64,000 nucleotides of DNA from Paraphysomonas bandaiensis. Its lineage: Eukaryota > Protista > Chrysophyceae. Both the position numbers and the translations under genes were made by a program. The notes under the pieces were generated by a model that was not told the DNA's origin, made no database searches, and saw only the letters and a program-made list of their open reading frames with translations. The DNA lies in assembly GCA_965644295.1 (NCBI GenBank), contig CBFFRP010000074.1, positions 62,001 through 126,000 of the forward strand. Direction: 5' to 3'. Below, one piece after another: positions 14,114-26,065 of the stretch (position 1 is the first letter of the stretch; each line of letters begins with the position of its first letter).

Positions 14114-15253
14114 ATGGGTATATGCAATACGAAAAATGCCGCTTGTGTGCTTGACACCATGTCGGCTGATATCTTCCGAGAGTTGGGACTTCAATCCGAA
14201 GAGATCCAACAGCTTTACAAAGCATTCAATGAAATCGATATAACGGGATCTGGATCAGTCCCGTTGCAGGATCTGCACAGCTTTTGTGACATCCCTGAGA
14301 GTTCATTAATCACGGCAATATTCAAAATGGGAGACACAGAGGGTGTTGAGTCGTTAAATTTCTGTCGCTTTGTGTGTTCCTTATGGTGTTTCCTCTCTTT
14401 GGAAACGACTAGGTTGGGATCCTATTCATTCGTCCTCTACGATGTGTTGCAGACAGAGAAACTTACGAAAAATACTGCCCGCCTCATGTTACGGGATATT
14501 CATGGTTGTGACTATCACAAGAATGTTGCTCTCAAAGCGGTTACGCAATTGCTGTTGTATAATTCCGACGGCATCCCTCTAAATGTGTACAGTGAGTGGT
14601 GCGACGGCCATCCCTCCCTCTATGCTCCCATTCTGACTTTACAGACTACCCTTCGTCAAAGAATATGTGGAGAATATTTCTGGGAGACCCTTACTAATCG
14701 ACGCAGTAGCACAGATGATCAGGCAGAAGCAGTATACATGTGGAAGATCAACTCTATATATGCAGAGGCTACTTTCAAGCAGCAGTTGGCTTGTAGACTG
14801 GAAGAAATCAGTAAAGAACTTTCAAGCAACAGGTCCATTACACATGATTCTCGCGGCCTTATGGGAAGTATTAGTAGCAGCATCAGCGGCATGGTTGGTC
14901 GTATCCCCAGTATCTCCTTAAAGAATGCACATGTGCCGAGCCCTCGCCACGAAGAGAATATTTTGGCAGATGCTGTGGGTGACCGCCCTCAATATGATGT
15001 CAAGCGAAAACCAATGAGTAAGCAACTTAGTCCCAGTAAACGGAGCTCTGTGGCTCCAGCAGACCTTATTGTAAGCCAGGTTGCAGCACCATCTTGGTGC
15101 AGGGAATATGGCACCCCCGTCTCATATGTTAAGAGTGCGACTAGTAGTCGCAACAACAGTCATACGAAGTATGTTGAAAATGAGGAAGCTGCCGAGAGTT
15201 CAACTAGAAGTTGTATTGTGTCCATTCCAGGATCGAGCGTATGCGAAGAATGA
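14114..15253 (+). CDS. EF-hand (calcineurin-B/recoverin-like) protein with putative N-terminal myristoylation/palmitoylation
   Basis: Starts MGIC (G2, C4). EF-hand-like LYKAFNEIDITGSGSV, degenerate loops GDTEGVESLNFCRF and FVLYDV. Disordered C-terminal tail. Confidence 0.7.
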   Translation: MGICNTKNAACVLDTMSADIFRELGLQSEEIQQLYKAFNEIDITGSGSVPLQDLHSFCDIPESSLITAIFKMGDTEGVESLNFCRFVCSLWCFLSLETTRLGSYSFVLYDVLQTEKLTKNTARLMLRDIHGCDYHKNVALKAVTQLLLYNSDGIPLNVYSEWCDGHPSLYAPILTLQTTLRQRICGEYFWETLTNRRSSTDDQAEAVYMWKINSIYAEATFKQQLACRLEEISKELSSNRSITHDSRGLMGSISSSISGMVGRIPSISLKNAHVPSPRHEENILADAVGDRPQYDVKRKPMSKQLSPSKRSSVAPADLIVSQVAAPSWCREYGTPVSYVKSATSSRNNSHTKYVENEEAAESSTRSCIVSIPGSSVCEE

Positions 15254-16919: not shown

Positions 16920-17060
16920 ATTCGACTATAAATATATATATACATAGACACCTCGTTTCACAGCAGTAGACTGAGTATTACTCTAGTGAACCACTCCCTT
17001 ATCACCATATCATGTTATAACAATACAAGGTTATCTAGTAGTATATATAAGAACACTCAT

Positions 17061-19802
17061 ATGTTACGTAAGAGTTTTTCATGGGAATCGAATATACATC
17101 CAGATATTAAAGACACTGCTATTCAATCATCTGATGGTGGGGATATTAAGAGTCCTACATTACCATTCATATATCAATTACATGACTGTTATGATGATAA
17201 ATATCGAGAATTTAAACGTAATGCTATACCGTATGATACTCTATTCATTGGACTTATAGTGTGTAGTGTATTGTATACACTCCTATTCATTGTATCAGTT
17301 CTCTATCCCATATCAGGATATGCATTGATCACATACAGTACATGGATATTTGTATTATTTTCATTGATTCCAGGATGGTTGTGTATGTATAAAAAATATA
17401 TTCCACAATCGATGCTGTGGCTCTGTAAAGACAGTCTGATCACCGTGTATATGAACTTTCATATCGTCGCCCTGTGCTGGAGTCTTTTGGTTCGTCTATA
17501 CGTGGGTAACTGCGTTGGCTGTACTGGAATGCGAGTCTTTGAATGCAACCCATATCATGCAGCTCAGTCTATGCCCCCAGAGCACGTCCTTTTATTGACC
17601 ATCACACTCTTCGCTTTCCATCTGTGTTTAGACCGTTCTTTTTTAGAGCTTCTTATACCATGTAGTTTGGTATACGCTACTCTATTTGTGGGTATGTTGA
17701 TGTTTTCAAATTTATCCTCCTTTCCTATCCTGGCCATATTTCCTCTATGTGTATACGTCATATTCCTCTCTGAGCGATGTACGTTTCGAATGTACACTCT
17801 GAAAGTGCGTTTAGAAGAACTCGTGCAAGGCAAAACTGTTACGAATAGCTACTGCCGTGATGATCAAACTGACCATCACTTAAAAGAAGTGCAGTATATC
17901 ATAGGAAATATAGCACATGATCTGAAGACTCCTATGCAGGCCTTAACTATGGGCGTAGACGAAGTCGCCGCCCTCAATCAGCAGCGGAAGGAAATCATAT
18001 CATCCGCAAAAGCAAGGGCCAAGGCAATTGCCAGTGGTAAAGTAGATTTGGACCGAGTAAATGAACCTCTTTACCACTACGAGCCACCTAATAAAGAATC
18101 ATATAGTGCAAGTACTAGAGGTGCTACTGCCGAACTAAATGAAGCTATACAACATCTTCGAACGGCTCCCACCATTATATTCGACCAACTTCGAGCCAAA
18201 GTAATAGAAGCCAATGCGATGCAAATGAGTGAAGTACTTCAGTCTCTAAGAGATACTTCCAGTTTCATGATGATGAATATTAATCGGGCAATTGACTACA
18301 GTAAGAGTTCTAATGGTGTACATCTCGTGCCTACAATGGATACCGTGAATATTATATCCACTCTCCATTGGGCAGTGAATTGTGTTCGAAGGCTTCAGGA
18401 TAGAATTCCTATCATTATAGACCCAATACCTAATTCCCACGTTCTCAATCCTTATGTAATAACGGACAGAAACTGGTTCATAGATAATATACTCTGTCTG
18501 GTGTCTAATGCTGTAAAATTTACAACGGAAGGGGAGGTCCGAATTTCTGTGTGCGTTGAAGACGCGACTGTTCCCTCTATCGAAGAGGCTGGAGCTAGCG
18601 ATTTGAGTCCGTTTGAGAATTCAAGTTTTTCGAAAAACTCGTCTGCTGAAAACAAAAAAATCAAAATTGTCGTTCAAGACAGTGGAATAGGGGTTCCGTC
18701 GGAGAAAAAAGGTAGCTTGTTCCAACCCTTTATCCAGGCACAGCGAATGGCTGGTGGTACCGGGTTGGGACTATATAGTTTAGCGAAGAGAGTAGCTGCC
18801 CTTCATGGCTCCTACGGGTTATGCGACAGACCTGATGGACACCATGGTTCGTACTTTTGGTTTGATTTTCCGTATCTACCGGATCCTTTAAGACTGCAGG
18901 AAGAAAATGAAATGGAAGACAACAGTGTTTCTGCAAGTCCCCTTGGGATAAAGCCGAAAGATATTCTGATGAGCTCTTCAATAGATAAGCAGAATCATGA
19001 AGTGGAATCCGCCATTACCGGTGGGGAGAAGCCATGGGCTCTACAGGAGCATGATGAATATGAAAATATGGAAAAAGAAGTGGACATCAGGATGAAACTG
19101 TTACTCGTGGATGACTCGATCGTCATTCAAAAGGTGCAAATAGATCTATAGCGTATGGCATGGATCATGTAATTACGATTTGAGAATACGGAGCACAATG
19201 CTGCGCCATACCAATAAATTATAGATTTTTTATTTGTGAAACTGAATATATGGAATACATGTATAGTGATATGAATATTGCGTCGTTTTACTTCTTTTCT
19301 TATGCCTAAGCGATATTTATTGCTAACGTTGTGTGTGGTGTCTAGACACTTAAGAGGAGATTGGAAAAGAAAGGGTTTACAGTGTATCTAGCAGACAATG
19401 GTCTGCAAGGTCTACAGATGGCAAAAGAATTCGACTACGGAGTGATTCTGCTGGATATGAATATGCCTGTGAGTTGCTGCAAAGCCATGTTTGATGATAA
19501 TTTTATTTGTACAATATTAGAACAATTCACAGTATTACTTCTAATAGTGTATGTAGGTAATGGATGGTTACGAGTGCTGCCGTCGTATCCGCGACTATGA
19601 AAAGAGTGTTAATATAAATCAGCCCGATGCTTCCAAACGTGCACGTCAAATTATTATCGGAGTATCAGCCAATAGCGCTTCAGATACTCGTGCCTATGCA
19701 TTGAGTGCTGGCATGGATGACTTCATTTCAAAACCATTCAGTATAGATAAATTCTGTAGTGTTTATGATTCCATGAGATTGGATAAACCTGTGGATATGT
19801 GA
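17061..19802 (+). CDS. Membrane hybrid sensor histidine kinase (multi-TM, HisKA, HATPase_c, receiver; 3 exons)
   Basis: H-box IAHDLKTPMQAL, N-box LVSNAVKFT, G1 VQDSGIG, F-box LFQPF, G2 GTGLGL. The receiver LLVDD..LLDMNMPVMDG..VSAN..GMDDFISKPF is assembled by introns 19134..19345 and 19469..19556. Confidence 0.93.
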
Positions 19803-20715: not shown

Positions 20716-21050
20716 GCACTCATTACTAATTACTGTACTATTAAGCAGTATGGTGTGAAACAGGCAATTTATTCTGTTGATATACCACCACAAATTTTCC
20801 ATCACATAGGTTCACATTACCATTACAACAGGAGCCGTAGAGCAACGTTAATGTAGCAAGCACGGATACCGTGACACTTGCAGTGATGACAGATACAACA
20901 CCTGAAATCACAATCACCACGATAAAACTTACATACTCAATGTGCCCTCCTAACAGATAAACAGCTATATAGAGTGCAATTATACGATTATGCCACACCA
21001 CTATATATAGCCGAAATTTGTTTTGCACAACAAACATCCAATATAGTGCA

Positions 21051-24000
21051 TCAGACTATGTCTTCGTCATCTTCATTGAGGTTAACACTGCCACTACTAG
21101 AACCATCAAATTCCATCACTCTGTCATTGGAACTTTTTCGTGGAATGGATAGATCTGGAGGCGTCAAAATAGTTTCCTCCGGAGGACGATCAGACAGAGT
21201 GACATGGGCATCCTCAGAGCACTCTGCAGCTAGTAGGGGAGATCGAGCATGCGTATTCGATGTCATGGACGAATGCATGTGAACTACCCCGTCACTATTC
21301 TGCTGTACTTCGCCTCCATGAGTCCTCAAAAACACGTCAACTGAATTGTCAGATCCGCCGGAAAGTAAACGAGAAAACATCCTTGACGATCGTGATAAAA
21401 AATTCACTGAGGTTGGGGAAGTTTTGACGTCTGGAGTAAAACAATGGTATATTTCAATCACAAAACGCGCTAAGGAAATTATTGTATACCATACCCACCT
21501 TCACTTAAATCCACTGTTGATTCTGGAGGTCTGGTACAGCCATCCTCAAGGGATGTTTCCTCTGGGATCACTGACGAGCTTTTGTGCTCAAAGGAGGTGG
21601 ATAGCCTGGGAATAAACGACCGAAAGGAAGTGCCCCTTGAGGGGGATGCTTGCAGCTGATTTTTTTGATGTTGTGACTGACTTCTGATAAGCTGGACTGC
21701 TTCTGTTCTAGCCTATTGAGTATACATATATCATTTGCTGTTGGAATAAGTCTAGTGCGTACAGTACACAATGCACAATGATACGGTTAATAGAAAAACA
21801 TCAATAAAACAACGTGCCTTTATCTCCTCCACTTCAGCGTCTTCTGGGCATATCAATTTATACAATTCATCACAACTAATGGACCCATCTTTGTTAACAT
21901 CGATAGCTTTGAAAAGTCGTCTGAATTTATCATTGCTGCAAAAACAAGTTGGCCAATTCAAAATTATAGCCAAGCATTACACTTTTCACTCTAAATATAT
22001 TTAAAAAATAATTCATAAATTGTGTATAAAATACGTGGTCTTCTAAACGTCAATATATTATTGGTATCGAATGAAACAACAATACCTATAATGGAGGTGT
22101 AGCGCCCTCAAAAACTCTCTGACCTCGTAGTGATTTAAACTACCAGACCCGTTCACGTCGATAGTGTTAAAAAGGGCAGTTATTATCTGAATAAGATAAT
22201 TTAATCTTATATGAATATAAGGTAACCAATACAATAGCGCGACATATAAACGTATCACGGCATGAATGACATAGCACACGTTGTACCAACACAGTATGTA
22301 TGACATATAATTCATAACATATTGGGTTACCTCTTTTGCGGCAGGGCCAGAGGCGTTGATACGATTCTTTGCGGTAACCTGTAGCTGTTGAAGAAGTTGC
22401 TGCTGATCTTCCATCTGCTCTAACACCGACCCTATACATGTACCACATCATCCGCAGTAACAGCCCACATGCACCAAACCTACCCATTACATCTACTTCT
22501 AATTCCGCAATAGCAGACAACATGGAGGCTGTTTTCACTATCTCGCCCACAACAGGGAGGATAATAATTAAAGGACACATCCTGCAAACACCAAAATTAA
22601 ATGATCTAAAAGATATACAAAATAAAATACACATGGCAAATACTCCACATATGTAGAAGAAATGGCTTACAATGGCATATAATTGATACGGTGCAGACAA
22701 CACAAAAATTACAGGTGCACATATCGCGAATCACTTATAATGCTTACATAAGAATGTGCCACAGGACAGTGTTAGTAGTCTCAGCGCTAACTGTGCTGAT
22801 AAAATTGGTAACCCACAAAGAAAGGTATAAAGAGTTTAGCGTAATGCCGACCTCAACAGCCCTGCAAATAGTAAAGTAATCATGGTACTACAAATGTGGT
22901 CCTACACAAACCTGAAATATATAGTTGGGTCGTTGAGGAAGTATATGTGGCTATAGTCTTCAGATATTTTCATCGAAATATCAGCATGGTCTGGTAGGAC
23001 TCTCTGACCACTATTAATAAGACTCCGTATACCGGACATGAAGCCGGATCCCCTTGAGCTGTCACGTTTCAACTTCTGTAACTTAAACTACAACAATAAA
23101 TCATTGTGCGACACAGTACCATAGTCACTTGTTGGGCAACGTTCTATTCTACATATACAATGTTAAATTCCATACCTGCTCGATAGTATTTAGAGAATTC
23201 TCAGTTGCTAGTCGACCACTAGATGGGGTTCTCCCCAATGGTCCACCACCTAAAGTAATCGTGACACTTTTCCGTCTATCATTACCACTGGTGTCTAAAT
23301 CGTTGGCTGACGTTTCAGACGATTCCATAGCTGACACTACATTAGATCTTCGTTTATGTCTGAGGGCAGGGGCTACATATACATTTGTTAACTCAAATTA
23401 TATTCATACACTCGACTAAATATAGGGTTATACATTTCACACGACACAGAGTGCACTACGATATAAAATGCGATTATATCTAGTAAAATTAGAACAACGA
23501 ACTCATGTACATATATATACTGCAGGAATGCGATACCTTTCATACTATCTTCCTTCTTATTTTGTTTCTCGGATGCAAATAGAGAACCAATAAATGATAT
23601 CGCACTCCCGATACGATCCGTAAAATCATCATTAGTGACATTCGTGGACTGCTTATGAAGTATTGGGGCATCATCAATACTAGACATCTTATCTAAAAAG
23701 ACATTAATATTAGAACGAATGCATATACTATCACAGGGGGTCATTTCACCTATATTGGACCTCAGTGTATTAATGGACATTCTTCTGCTTGCTGTTCGCC
23801 CTCTCATCGAGTTTGATCTCTTCGGGTTGCCATCAGTTCCATCGGCGGAGATATCTATTTCAATTCGACGTCTCAATTCCACCTACAATTTCACATTTTA
23901 ACTATGCGGATGGAGAAGCTCTAGTTCAAAGTATAACAACATTATGAGCACGATATCATCATATGAAGGCACGCATTGAACTCAGAACTTCATATTCCAC

Positions 24001-25233
24001 ATACATTTAGTGAGGTGGACTCTTCAAGGGCCAAAAAGTCTACATAATCGATAATATCAGTGACTCCAGACTGAGCCATAAGTCTGTACATCTCGAATTA
24101 TTTCTCCGCATCACAAACATCAAAATATAAAATACATTAAAGCATTCGACACTATGTGAAGCACAATACCGTGTATTTTTAATTCTACGACAGTGTGCCA
24201 TGTAATAATCAACCGCACATGATGATAAACAATATACATTGATCACGAAATTAAACCCGTACAGTGTGCCACCTATTATGAGACGTATAACATACCTCAT
24301 AACATACACCCTGCCCATAGTGTAGACTATCAGCGCATATCCCGATAACGCCATTCCACATACAAAAAACAACTGCAGGTGCATAAAGGTACACCTATCA
24401 GTTATACCGTACCGCCCGCTATCTTCTGTTCCATCGGTGTGTTTGAATCCTTCACAGTTCCAAAAAGATGCCTGACCAAACTTTACCCGTATATAATTTA
24501 CCAAACAAAGGATAATCAGTACACCCCAGCTAAAGTTACTTATATTAATTATCCGCAGAGAGTACTTCTCGAAACATCCAGACAAGTACAGCCCATAATT
24601 AAAATCACCAGGTAGCCAGTAGGTGTCTCTGAAGAGGGCGTATATGATCTTGAACTCGGCTTTTGTACGTAACGTTGAGAAGGGTAGATAACGAAAATTA
24701 TACAGAAAACTGGAAAATATATTTCGAGGTTTGGCCAGTTCCTTCAGCAAGTCAGAAATGGCGATAGCGTGGTAGCGGTCATACTGATGTGACGAGAGAA
24801 TAGATAAAAGCATTATATACAAGGCGTGCGCGACGAAAAATATAGCAATAAAGAAGATGATATAACCAACAAAGTCGAAAATGTTTATCCATGAGGAAGA
24901 GGAAGCTTTGGGGTGGGTGGCTTGATACATGGCCAGAGTGAAGCTGACGAATCCTATATTGCATATAAATCAGCACTCAACTTAAACAAAACCGACATAC
25001 ATATTCATCTACGCAAATTTTAAACCATAAATCATTTATGAATAGATACCATTATTCATGAGCTCCTTATATATTCTCTGCAACATCTTATTATACGTCA
25101 CAGAGCCGCCAATAAATTTTTCAAAACGGCTTGTTATGTACTCGAACACGACAAGAAATAATACAGTGCCACAGAAAGCTCCAGTTGCAACATCTACATC
25201 AATTTCACTGGCTAATCCAAACCGAAACGTCAT
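21051..25233 (-). CDS. MLO-like multi-pass membrane protein with C-terminal EF-hands (many exons)
   Basis: Splicing 25049..24955 gives LVVFEYIT...MLQRIYKELMNNGFVSFTL (MLO KxELMLLGFISLLL). Also YIIFFIAIFFVAH, DFNYGLYLSGCFEKYSLRIINISNFSW (MLO FDFxKYxxRSLEDDFxxVVGISxxxW), HIYFLNDP (MLO FWFxRP). EF loops DVNGSGSLNHYE and DVNKDGSISCDE. Confidence 0.75.
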
Positions 25234-26065
25234 TGTCCAGATAGATCAATTCCCGGTTAGGTATGTAAACAACAGACTTCAACAGAAAATTGTCTGACTA
25301 CATAGTTATATTGACAATAATATCAGATGAATAGTTGGTTCTAAACTGTTATTATTTCTATATATATTCAGACTTTGTGTGGGTTTACTTTAATGAATAC
25401 GACTGACTCTTCTATCAACTGCTTTATGATGTATGTATGTATATTTCCATCTAGAATACAGTCATATCTATACCAGGACAATACTGGACGAGGAGTCTGA
25501 CATACAAAGTGTCTATAGCTACGACCGTATCTGTTATTTTTTTAACTGTAGAAAATATGAGGAATATTCGACGAAGATCTGAATGTAGTTTGTGAAAATA
25601 CTGTGCAGTAGTTCTACAAAAATCAAAAATTGAACCCACTGTAATGCCTTTTTACTATGTACGTACGTACAGAGTACTATGTATGAAAGTTTGCAAGGTA
25701 AAGTACGTATTTTCCTCTTGTTGGCTGTTTCCATTTTTTTTTCTATTCATAAGATATCCACCAACATAAATCAGTGACGACACTGACGACTGACGTATGA
25801 TGTTAAAACTACCTACACACTGTTATATATATGTGCTTTTGAAGGTGCTCAACTGTGTATCTATCGCTTTGTCTCATCTTCATCTCCATTCGGTTTATAA
25901 CGATACATTACATTCAATTGCATGTTATATACATCCTCATAATAGGGTGTCCCTATACATTACCTTACAATAGTAGTGAATATTATACAGATAAATTTAT
26001 TTGTGTGTAGTTGCTGACGTTTTTAAGTTTATCGTTAGGTTGAAATATAGATAGATATATAAAGC

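Follow-up and report, generated by a model that had tools for sequence, protein, structure and literature searches.

We report that positions 21051 to 25233 of a 64,000-nucleotide stretch of DNA from the stramenopile protist Paraphysomonas bandaiensis (contig CBFFRP010000074.1; the whole stretch is referred to below as the window) hold a single expressed minus-strand gene, in which the exons of a predicted seven-helix membrane domain are followed by those of a pair of EF-hands. The membrane domain is very probably homologous to that of the MLO proteins, of which it would form a remote branch, and the EF-hand pair is predicted to pack as one calmodulin-like lobe. We propose, at a probability of about 0.6, that the product is a polytopic MLO-like protein that mediates or controls Ca2+ entry and is subject to feedback in cis from its own EF-hand lobe. 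The preliminary description of this DNA, made from the letters and a list of open reading frames (ORFs), had read the locus as an MLO-family channel-like protein fused directly to EF-hands.

Gene Structure and Expression

The window is eukaryotic DNA with ~38-44% G+C. RNA contigs of four public runs from four different studies, two of them labeled as cultures of coded organisms and two (X5 and X9) marine poly(A)/cDNA metatranscriptomes, were placed on positions 20800-25500, where they run from 25383/25387 to below 20800 as one minus-strand mRNA. One contig of X1 (record 1, 3195 nt) and one of X2 (record 3, 3125 nt) each contain every exon and the 13 joints, and the X5 and X9 contigs give the same joints in pieces. 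Because these RNA contigs cover the 14 exons as one mRNA, the membrane exons and the EF-hand exons are one expressed gene. After small shifts of the cuts within ambiguous bases, 12 of the 13 introns are of the GT-AG type and one is GC-AG; the reading frame is intact, and an in-frame stop lies upstream of the ATG at 25233. The spliced model built from RNA, with 14 exons encoding 902 residues, has one intron more than a reading of the ORFs suggests, that at 23693-23749, which was not predictable from the ORF list and was seen via the RNA contigs.

The preliminary description had also considered that transcripts might assign the transmembrane and EF-hand exons to separate genes. Two neighboring genes would have nothing in their favor except the fragmented ORF picture, and this alternative, to which we assign virtually no chance, is refuted by the single RNA contigs, which across the four runs and four studies join all 14 exons in frame. 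The exon order is, moreover, the same in five paralogs and in full-length relatives from other organisms.

Two minor features of the RNA data are recorded here. Low-depth contigs of X1 and X5 at 24104-24287 and 24216-24522 lie within the second intron (212 nt) or run over its boundary and may stem from intron retention, pre-mRNA or residual DNA. Single bases differ between assembly and RNA at 23239 (T>C, in all four runs) and at 21661, 25150 and 25191 (in two runs each), which probably reflects strain or allele variation.

The Membrane Domain and Its Probable Kinship With MLO

Length, hydropathy and motif counts were obtained from the joined and translated exons, and the homology, family and fold searches were made with single exons or with relatives. 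The four motif blocks that had been noted in the letters are all present in the spliced reading: KELMNNG and FVSF meet over the joint of exons 1 and 2, YIIFFIAIFF and DFNYGLYLSGCFEKY...IINISNFSW lie in exon 2, and IYFLNDP lies in exon 7. The MLO kinship is concluded from two further lines of evidence, namely the collinear matches of relatives to the Pfam Mlo profile (PF03094, curated cut-off 24 bits) and a protein-language-model search. A HMMER scan of exon 2 against 1.84 billion cluster representatives gave 293 related clusters, and a Pfam scan of 45 long relatives at E <= 0.01 found Mlo in four of them, with no other membrane family matching more than one of the 45; EF-hands were present in 24.

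The individual Mlo matches are partial and come from different regions of the profile. P0125 and P0139 match positions 16-71 with the region equivalent to exon 1, P0128 matches positions 139-200 at 24.0 bits, which reaches the cut-off, and P0150, which its source database annotates as PF03094, matches positions 241-302 at 25.7 bits, above the cut-off. The paralog L012 from the same genome (contig C185) adds positions 345-399 with the region of exon 8, which holds the sixth transmembrane helix (TM6), at 23.9 bits and hence 0.1 below the cut-off. On these five relatives, four parts of the profile (TM1-TM2, TM3, pre-TM4 and pre-TM6) are thus matched collinearly, in the order of the chain. Exon 2 of the target aligns to P0128 (E 1e-21) and P0150 (E 2e-17) over their Mlo-matching stretches, which ties YIIFFIAIFF to TM3 of MLO and DFNYGLYL...W to the conserved segment ahead of TM4. 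In the language-model feature search with exon 2, clusters labeled Mlo made up 28 of the 30 named matches, with a top score of 0.91.

Other searches were less informative. Word-indexed searches for homologous proteins returned members of the target's own family only and no canonical plant MLO. A genome-wide search with PF03094 gave no candidates and was too coarse to be read further, as its controls were also silent and it missed paralog L012, which hmmscan scores at 23.9 bits. Weak matches to Peptidase_A22B (E 0.016) and ATG27 (E 0.03) were dismissed as far below the cut-offs of those families.

The hydropathy profile has five strong helices (~15-33, 86-111, 198-218, 253-275 and 556-578) and two weaker ones (~57-72 and 528-550), seven in total, and the count of Lys plus Arg per loop is 5 in the first intracellular loop (IC1), 1 in the first extracellular loop (EC1), 11 in IC2, 4 in EC2, 36 in IC3 and 0 in EC3. 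Since both fit, the predicted topology has the N-terminus outside and the C-terminus in the cytosol. Among the full-length relatives the closest to the target is P0007 (996 aa), which was modeled with AlphaFold2 from an input of 150 relatives. The model has a predicted template modeling score (pTM) of 0.69 and a predicted local distance difference test score (pLDDT) of >90 in the helices, and presents in order seven long helices, a helix after TM7 (623-651) and the EF-hand pair, with the middle of the TM5-TM6 loop (pLDDT <50) and the last 220 residues disordered. TM1-TM5 folded alone gave a pLDDT of 83. When searched against the PDB with Foldseek and VIA-align, the whole model retrieved only EF-hand lobes and TM1-TM5 alone only two-helix hairpins (Z <= 9.6), which is within the noise of helical models; an atlas fold search, run with all 996 residues of the model, yielded overwhelmingly EF-hand clusters, and PDB sequence searches with paralog L012 and the profiles A1 and A3 gave only EF-hand proteins and no match for the membrane part. 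These PDB fold results are no argument against MLO kinship, as MLO-like chains turned up in none of the PDB searches.

The EF-Hand Pair

The two EF loops that the preliminary description had placed after the last transmembrane helix are confirmed as DVNGSGSLNHYE and DVNKDGSISCDE, and both exons that encode them score above the 25-bit Pfam cut-off of EF-hand_6 (Table 1). The Pfam families to which such a pair belongs are PF13405, PF00036 and PF13499. Both loops are canonical over their 12 residues, with Asp at position 1, Asp, Asn or Ser at positions 3 and 5, Gly at 6, a hydrophobic residue at 8 and Glu at 12, and they are spaced 36 residues apart, as in one calmodulin lobe. In the P0007 model the region ~631-726 superposes on calmodulin-type lobes (Z 10-12, root mean square deviation 1.3-2.9 A), a result for the relative and not for the target itself, and the family profile matches calmodulin residues 77-148 in a PDB sequence search. 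Packing of the pair as a single calmodulin-like lobe is accordingly what the model of the relative predicts. Both loops are also canonical in the closest paralog. In some paralogs position 12 is occupied by Asp, or the second loop is degenerate.

The position of the pair differs from that first described. The EF-hands begin ~45 residues past TM7, behind an acidic helix, rather than directly after the last transmembrane helix, and they lie just beyond the helix that occupies the place of the plant calmodulin-binding site rather than at that place itself. The Pfam scan of the exons gave no domain match for the C-terminal tail (exons 13-14).

Table 1. Positions of the MLO-like/EF-hand gene, its parts and its distant paralogs.
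Feature	Position	Strand	Remarks
Transcribed region	20800-25383	-	mRNA ~3.2 kb; 3' end ~85 nt below 20800
Coding region, 14 exons, 902 aa	21051-25233	-	ATG at 25233, stop 21051-21053; exons joined from the window
Exon 1, coding part	25050-25233	-	Short N-terminus, TM1, basic loop IC1, start of TM2 (IYKELMNNG motif)
Exon 2	24296-24953	-	Rest of TM2, TM3, IC2 with DFNYGLYL motif, TM4, Cys-containing EC2, TM5
Exons 3-7	22912-24083	-	Ser/Arg-rich insert, TM5-TM6 cytosolic loop, IYFLNDP motif at end
Exon 3	24005-24083	-	
Exon 4	23750-23882	-	
Exon 5	23537-23692	-	
Exon 6	23176-23372	-	
Exon 7	22912-23087	-	With IYFLNDP
Exon 8	22748-22861	-	TM6, NSLYLSLWVTNF motif
Exon 9	22484-22581	-	TM7
Exon 10	22331-22431	-	Acidic, Gln-rich helix after TM7; place of the plant MLO calmodulin-binding helix
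Exon 11	22086-22186	-	EF-hand 1, loop at 22124-22159 (D642-E653, DVNGSGSLNHYE); EF-hand_6 25.7 bits
Exon 12	21818-21935	-	EF-hand 2, loop at 21866-21901 (D678-E689, DVNKDGSISCDE); EF-hand_6 29.3 bits, EF-hand_5 28.2 bits
GC-AG intron, 105 nt	21713-21817	-	Between EF-hand 2 and tail; from RNA contigs
Exons 13-14, coding part	21054-21712	-	Ser-rich C-terminal tail, ~197 aa
Distant paralogs L009-L015	Contigs C64, C20, C338, C185, C124, C297, C191		ORFs run to the second EF-hand

The Ser/Arg-Rich TM5-TM6 Loop

A Ser/Arg-rich insertion in a cytosolic loop had been recognized from the letters and is indeed present between TM5 and TM6, although it starts at ~24083 and not at 23880. It covers residues ~282-527 (exons 3-7, 24083-22912), with 15% Ser and 10% Arg, is little conserved among the paralogs and is predicted to be disordered over its ~250 residues, as is the equivalent region of the P0007 model. 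Every long relative has a comparable insert, which ranges from 220 to 830 residues. Measured against shuffles of the same composition, the loop has 9 R..S/T motifs where 4.4 are expected and 4 [RK][RK].[ST] motifs where 0.95 are expected (P ~0.013 in each case), a modest enrichment of basophilic kinase motifs that hints at phospho-regulation of the loop.

Paralogs and Distribution of the Family

From its sequence, the target appears to be a member of a branch of MLO-like proteins that is very divergent and mostly found in chrysophytes/ochrophytes. All relatives that carry organism names are chrysophytes (Paraphysomonas imperforata, Dinobryon and Epipyxis), and the genome (62.6 Mb, 669 contigs) contains at least 13 paralogs of the MLO-like/EF-hand gene. 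Five close paralogs, with 44-57% identity to the target over exon 2, have retained exons 1, 2, 3, 8, 9, 11 and 12 in order, and at least seven more distant ones (28-32%) have the same layout; their ORFs are 767-893 residues long, and their first EF-hand is degenerate. The order of an MLO-like part followed by EF-hands is shared by the five paralogs and by 24 of the 45 long relatives, and within the family conservation is strongest in the membrane helices and not in the loops. Intron density varies strongly within the family, from almost none in the distant paralogs, which are nearly intronless, to many in the five close paralogs and 13 in the target.

Proposed Mechanism and Alternatives

We propose that the target protein, like plant MLOs, would mediate or control the entry of Ca2+. 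Its own EF-hand lobe would sense the local rise in cytosolic Ca2+ and feed back on the membrane domain in cis, and in this way the built-in lobe would take over the job that has been proposed for free calmodulin acting in trans on plant MLOs, where calmodulin binds the proximal tail (10.64898/2026.04.10.716904). The long TM5-TM6 loop, rich as it is in basophilic-kinase motifs, would probably be a phosphorylation-controlled regulatory or docking region. A self-gating Ca2+ channel, as suggested in the preliminary description, is plausible on this analysis, and it should be kept in mind that the channel role of plant MLOs is itself still termed "proposed" (PMC12369466).

A number of results weigh against this proposal, and they concern both the membrane domain and the way in which the lobe might act on it. 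The target exons have no match to Pfam Mlo even at E <= 10, either as ORF pieces or as exact exons, and EF-hands are all that rises above cut-off in that scan. Hence, the profile search that was to support the first assignment bears out the EF-hand half, on both exons, and not the Mlo half, and the family identity holds as a seven-helix MLO-like protein recognized through relatives and the language model, whereas the target itself, scanned exon by exon, stays below the Pfam threshold and lacks two MLO hallmarks. The first of these is the cysteines of EC1, a loop that here has ~13 residues and no Cys; two near-invariant cysteines of the family (C228 and C257 in P0007 numbering) sit instead between TM4 and TM5. 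The second is the basic, Trp-containing calmodulin-binding helix, as residues 583-640 contain 3 Lys/Arg vs 7 Asp/Glu and no Trp, and the acidic helix after TM7 is not a classical calmodulin target for the EF lobe. The PDB searches, finally, gave no solved structure that resembles the membrane core, and the fold is thus silent on mechanism.

Such negatives could be taken to mean that the membrane domain is unrelated to MLO and belongs to another seven-helix family, the weak Mlo matches being compositional, and the low count of Mlo matches among the long relatives (four of 45 at E <= 0.01), together with the missing match in the target exons and the two absent hallmarks, would agree with this. 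We consider it highly unlikely, because five relatives match four profile parts in the right order, two of them attain the curated cut-off, Mlo is the label of 28 of the 30 named matches in the independent language-model search, and among the 45 relatives no other membrane family matches more than one at E <= 0.01. The main competing explanation accepts the descent from MLO and disputes the function: the protein would not be a channel but a scaffold in the membrane that senses Ca2+ and directs vesicle traffic or brings in other channels, with loop and tail used for docking. Plant MLOs act in polarized secretion and bind EXO70, and an indirect role of MLO in Ca2+ influx is still considered (10.64898/2026.04.10.716904, PMC10980356); in addition, more than half of the target protein is predicted to be disordered and is rich in phospho-motifs, as is the case in docking regions. 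Against the scaffold stands the conservation of the family, which is highest in its membrane helices and not in its loops, and we regard the scaffold as a rather unlikely explanation.

A more far-reaching version of the Ca2+ entry proposal is that these genes represent an overlooked, large ochrophyte class of self-gating MLO/calmodulin-lobe Ca2+ entry channels, in which the lobe would bind an intramolecular site as Ca2+ rises, the TM5-TM6 loop would be a kinase-controlled switch, and some copies would cooperate with adjacent hybrid histidine kinases. The points behind it are the at least 13 paralogs, the 293 related clusters and expression in ocean metatranscriptomes. We put it forward as a doubtful extension.

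Comparison With Known Systems

Among the closest known proteins are the plant MLOs (barley Mlo, Arabidopsis MLO2 and NORTIA/MLO7; PF03094), which matter in powdery-mildew resistance, fertilization and root growth. The target resembles them in its seven helices and cytosolic tail, in the collinear motifs of TM2 and TM3 and of the stretches that precede TM4 and TM6, and in having a Ca2+-sensor module at the proximal C-tail. It differs in similarity (below the Pfam threshold in the scan of its exons), in the placement of cysteines (two conserved ones in EC2 and none in EC1), in the acidic character of the proximal tail helix, which has no Trp, and in carrying the Ca2+ sensor in the same chain, where plant MLOs use free calmodulin. 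The TM5-TM6 loop, which has tens of residues in plant MLOs, is far longer in the target at ~250 residues.

Fusions of this kind have been described before. As reported by Kusch et al. (2016; PMC4824068), MLO-like proteins occur in oomycetes, Ectocarpus, alveolates and others, and fusions of an MLO-like part with C-terminal calmodulin-like EF-hands, termed "Rosetta-stone hybrids," are found in green algae, oomycetes and Apusozoa, which agrees with the statement of the preliminary description that MLO-like proteins with EF-hands are known outside plants. Because it was published in 2016, the fusion architecture itself is not new, and the target is a moderately new member of an uncharacterized group. 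Like those fusions it has an MLO-like part and then EF-hands, and in both cases the evidence is prediction only; unlike them it comes from an ochrophyte (chrysophyte-like) lineage, which is not listed for the fusion in that paper, its EF-hands are one pair, equivalent to one lobe of calmodulin, its loop insert is very long, and its family comprises at least 13 paralogs. What is added here is the proof that a single transcript encodes both parts, the range of the family in chrysophytes/ochrophytes and its size, and the constant presence of a giant loop, combined with the loss of two hallmarks of MLO. The two-pore channel TPC1 likewise combines a Ca2+ sensor and a cation-conducting membrane domain in one chain, and plant TPC1 requires its second EF-hand for gating (PMC11085791), but its membrane fold is unrelated to that of the target and the likeness is one of logic only.

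Whether plant MLOs are calmodulin-gated Ca2+ channels is still debated, and the natural joining of an MLO-like membrane domain and a calmodulin lobe is evidence of the "Rosetta stone" kind that both parts work together. It also offers a system in one polypeptide, in which Ca2+ feedback could be addressed through two EF loops. For the biology of marine protists, the family adds a candidate for Ca2+ signaling that is absent from a 2024 survey of diatom Ca2+ channels, in which MLO is not mentioned (PMC11085791). The gain is limited in that the architecture was published in 2016 and the function proposed here is inferred.

Neighboring Genes

On the plus strand of the window, an intronless ORF of 379 aa (14114-15253) combines an EF-hand-like loop, DITGSGSVPLQD, close to the N-terminus with a tail rich in Ser, and gave no Pfam match at E <= 0.001. 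A multi-pass hybrid histidine kinase with a HATPase_c domain (16986-19151, plus strand) lies tail to tail with the MLO-like/EF-hand gene. On contig C64 a hybrid histidine kinase with HATPase_c, HisKA and receiver domains (L009:4066-6000, plus strand) is located head to head with one of the distant paralogs. Identity between the kinase of the window and that of C64 is 39%, and only ~12 matches for this type of kinase were obtained in the genome; two other histidine-kinase paralogs have no MLO-like gene within 10 kb. It seems unlikely that two such kinase/MLO-like neighbor pairs arose by chance, and the adjacency possibly goes back to an old duplication of the gene pair or has a functional basis.

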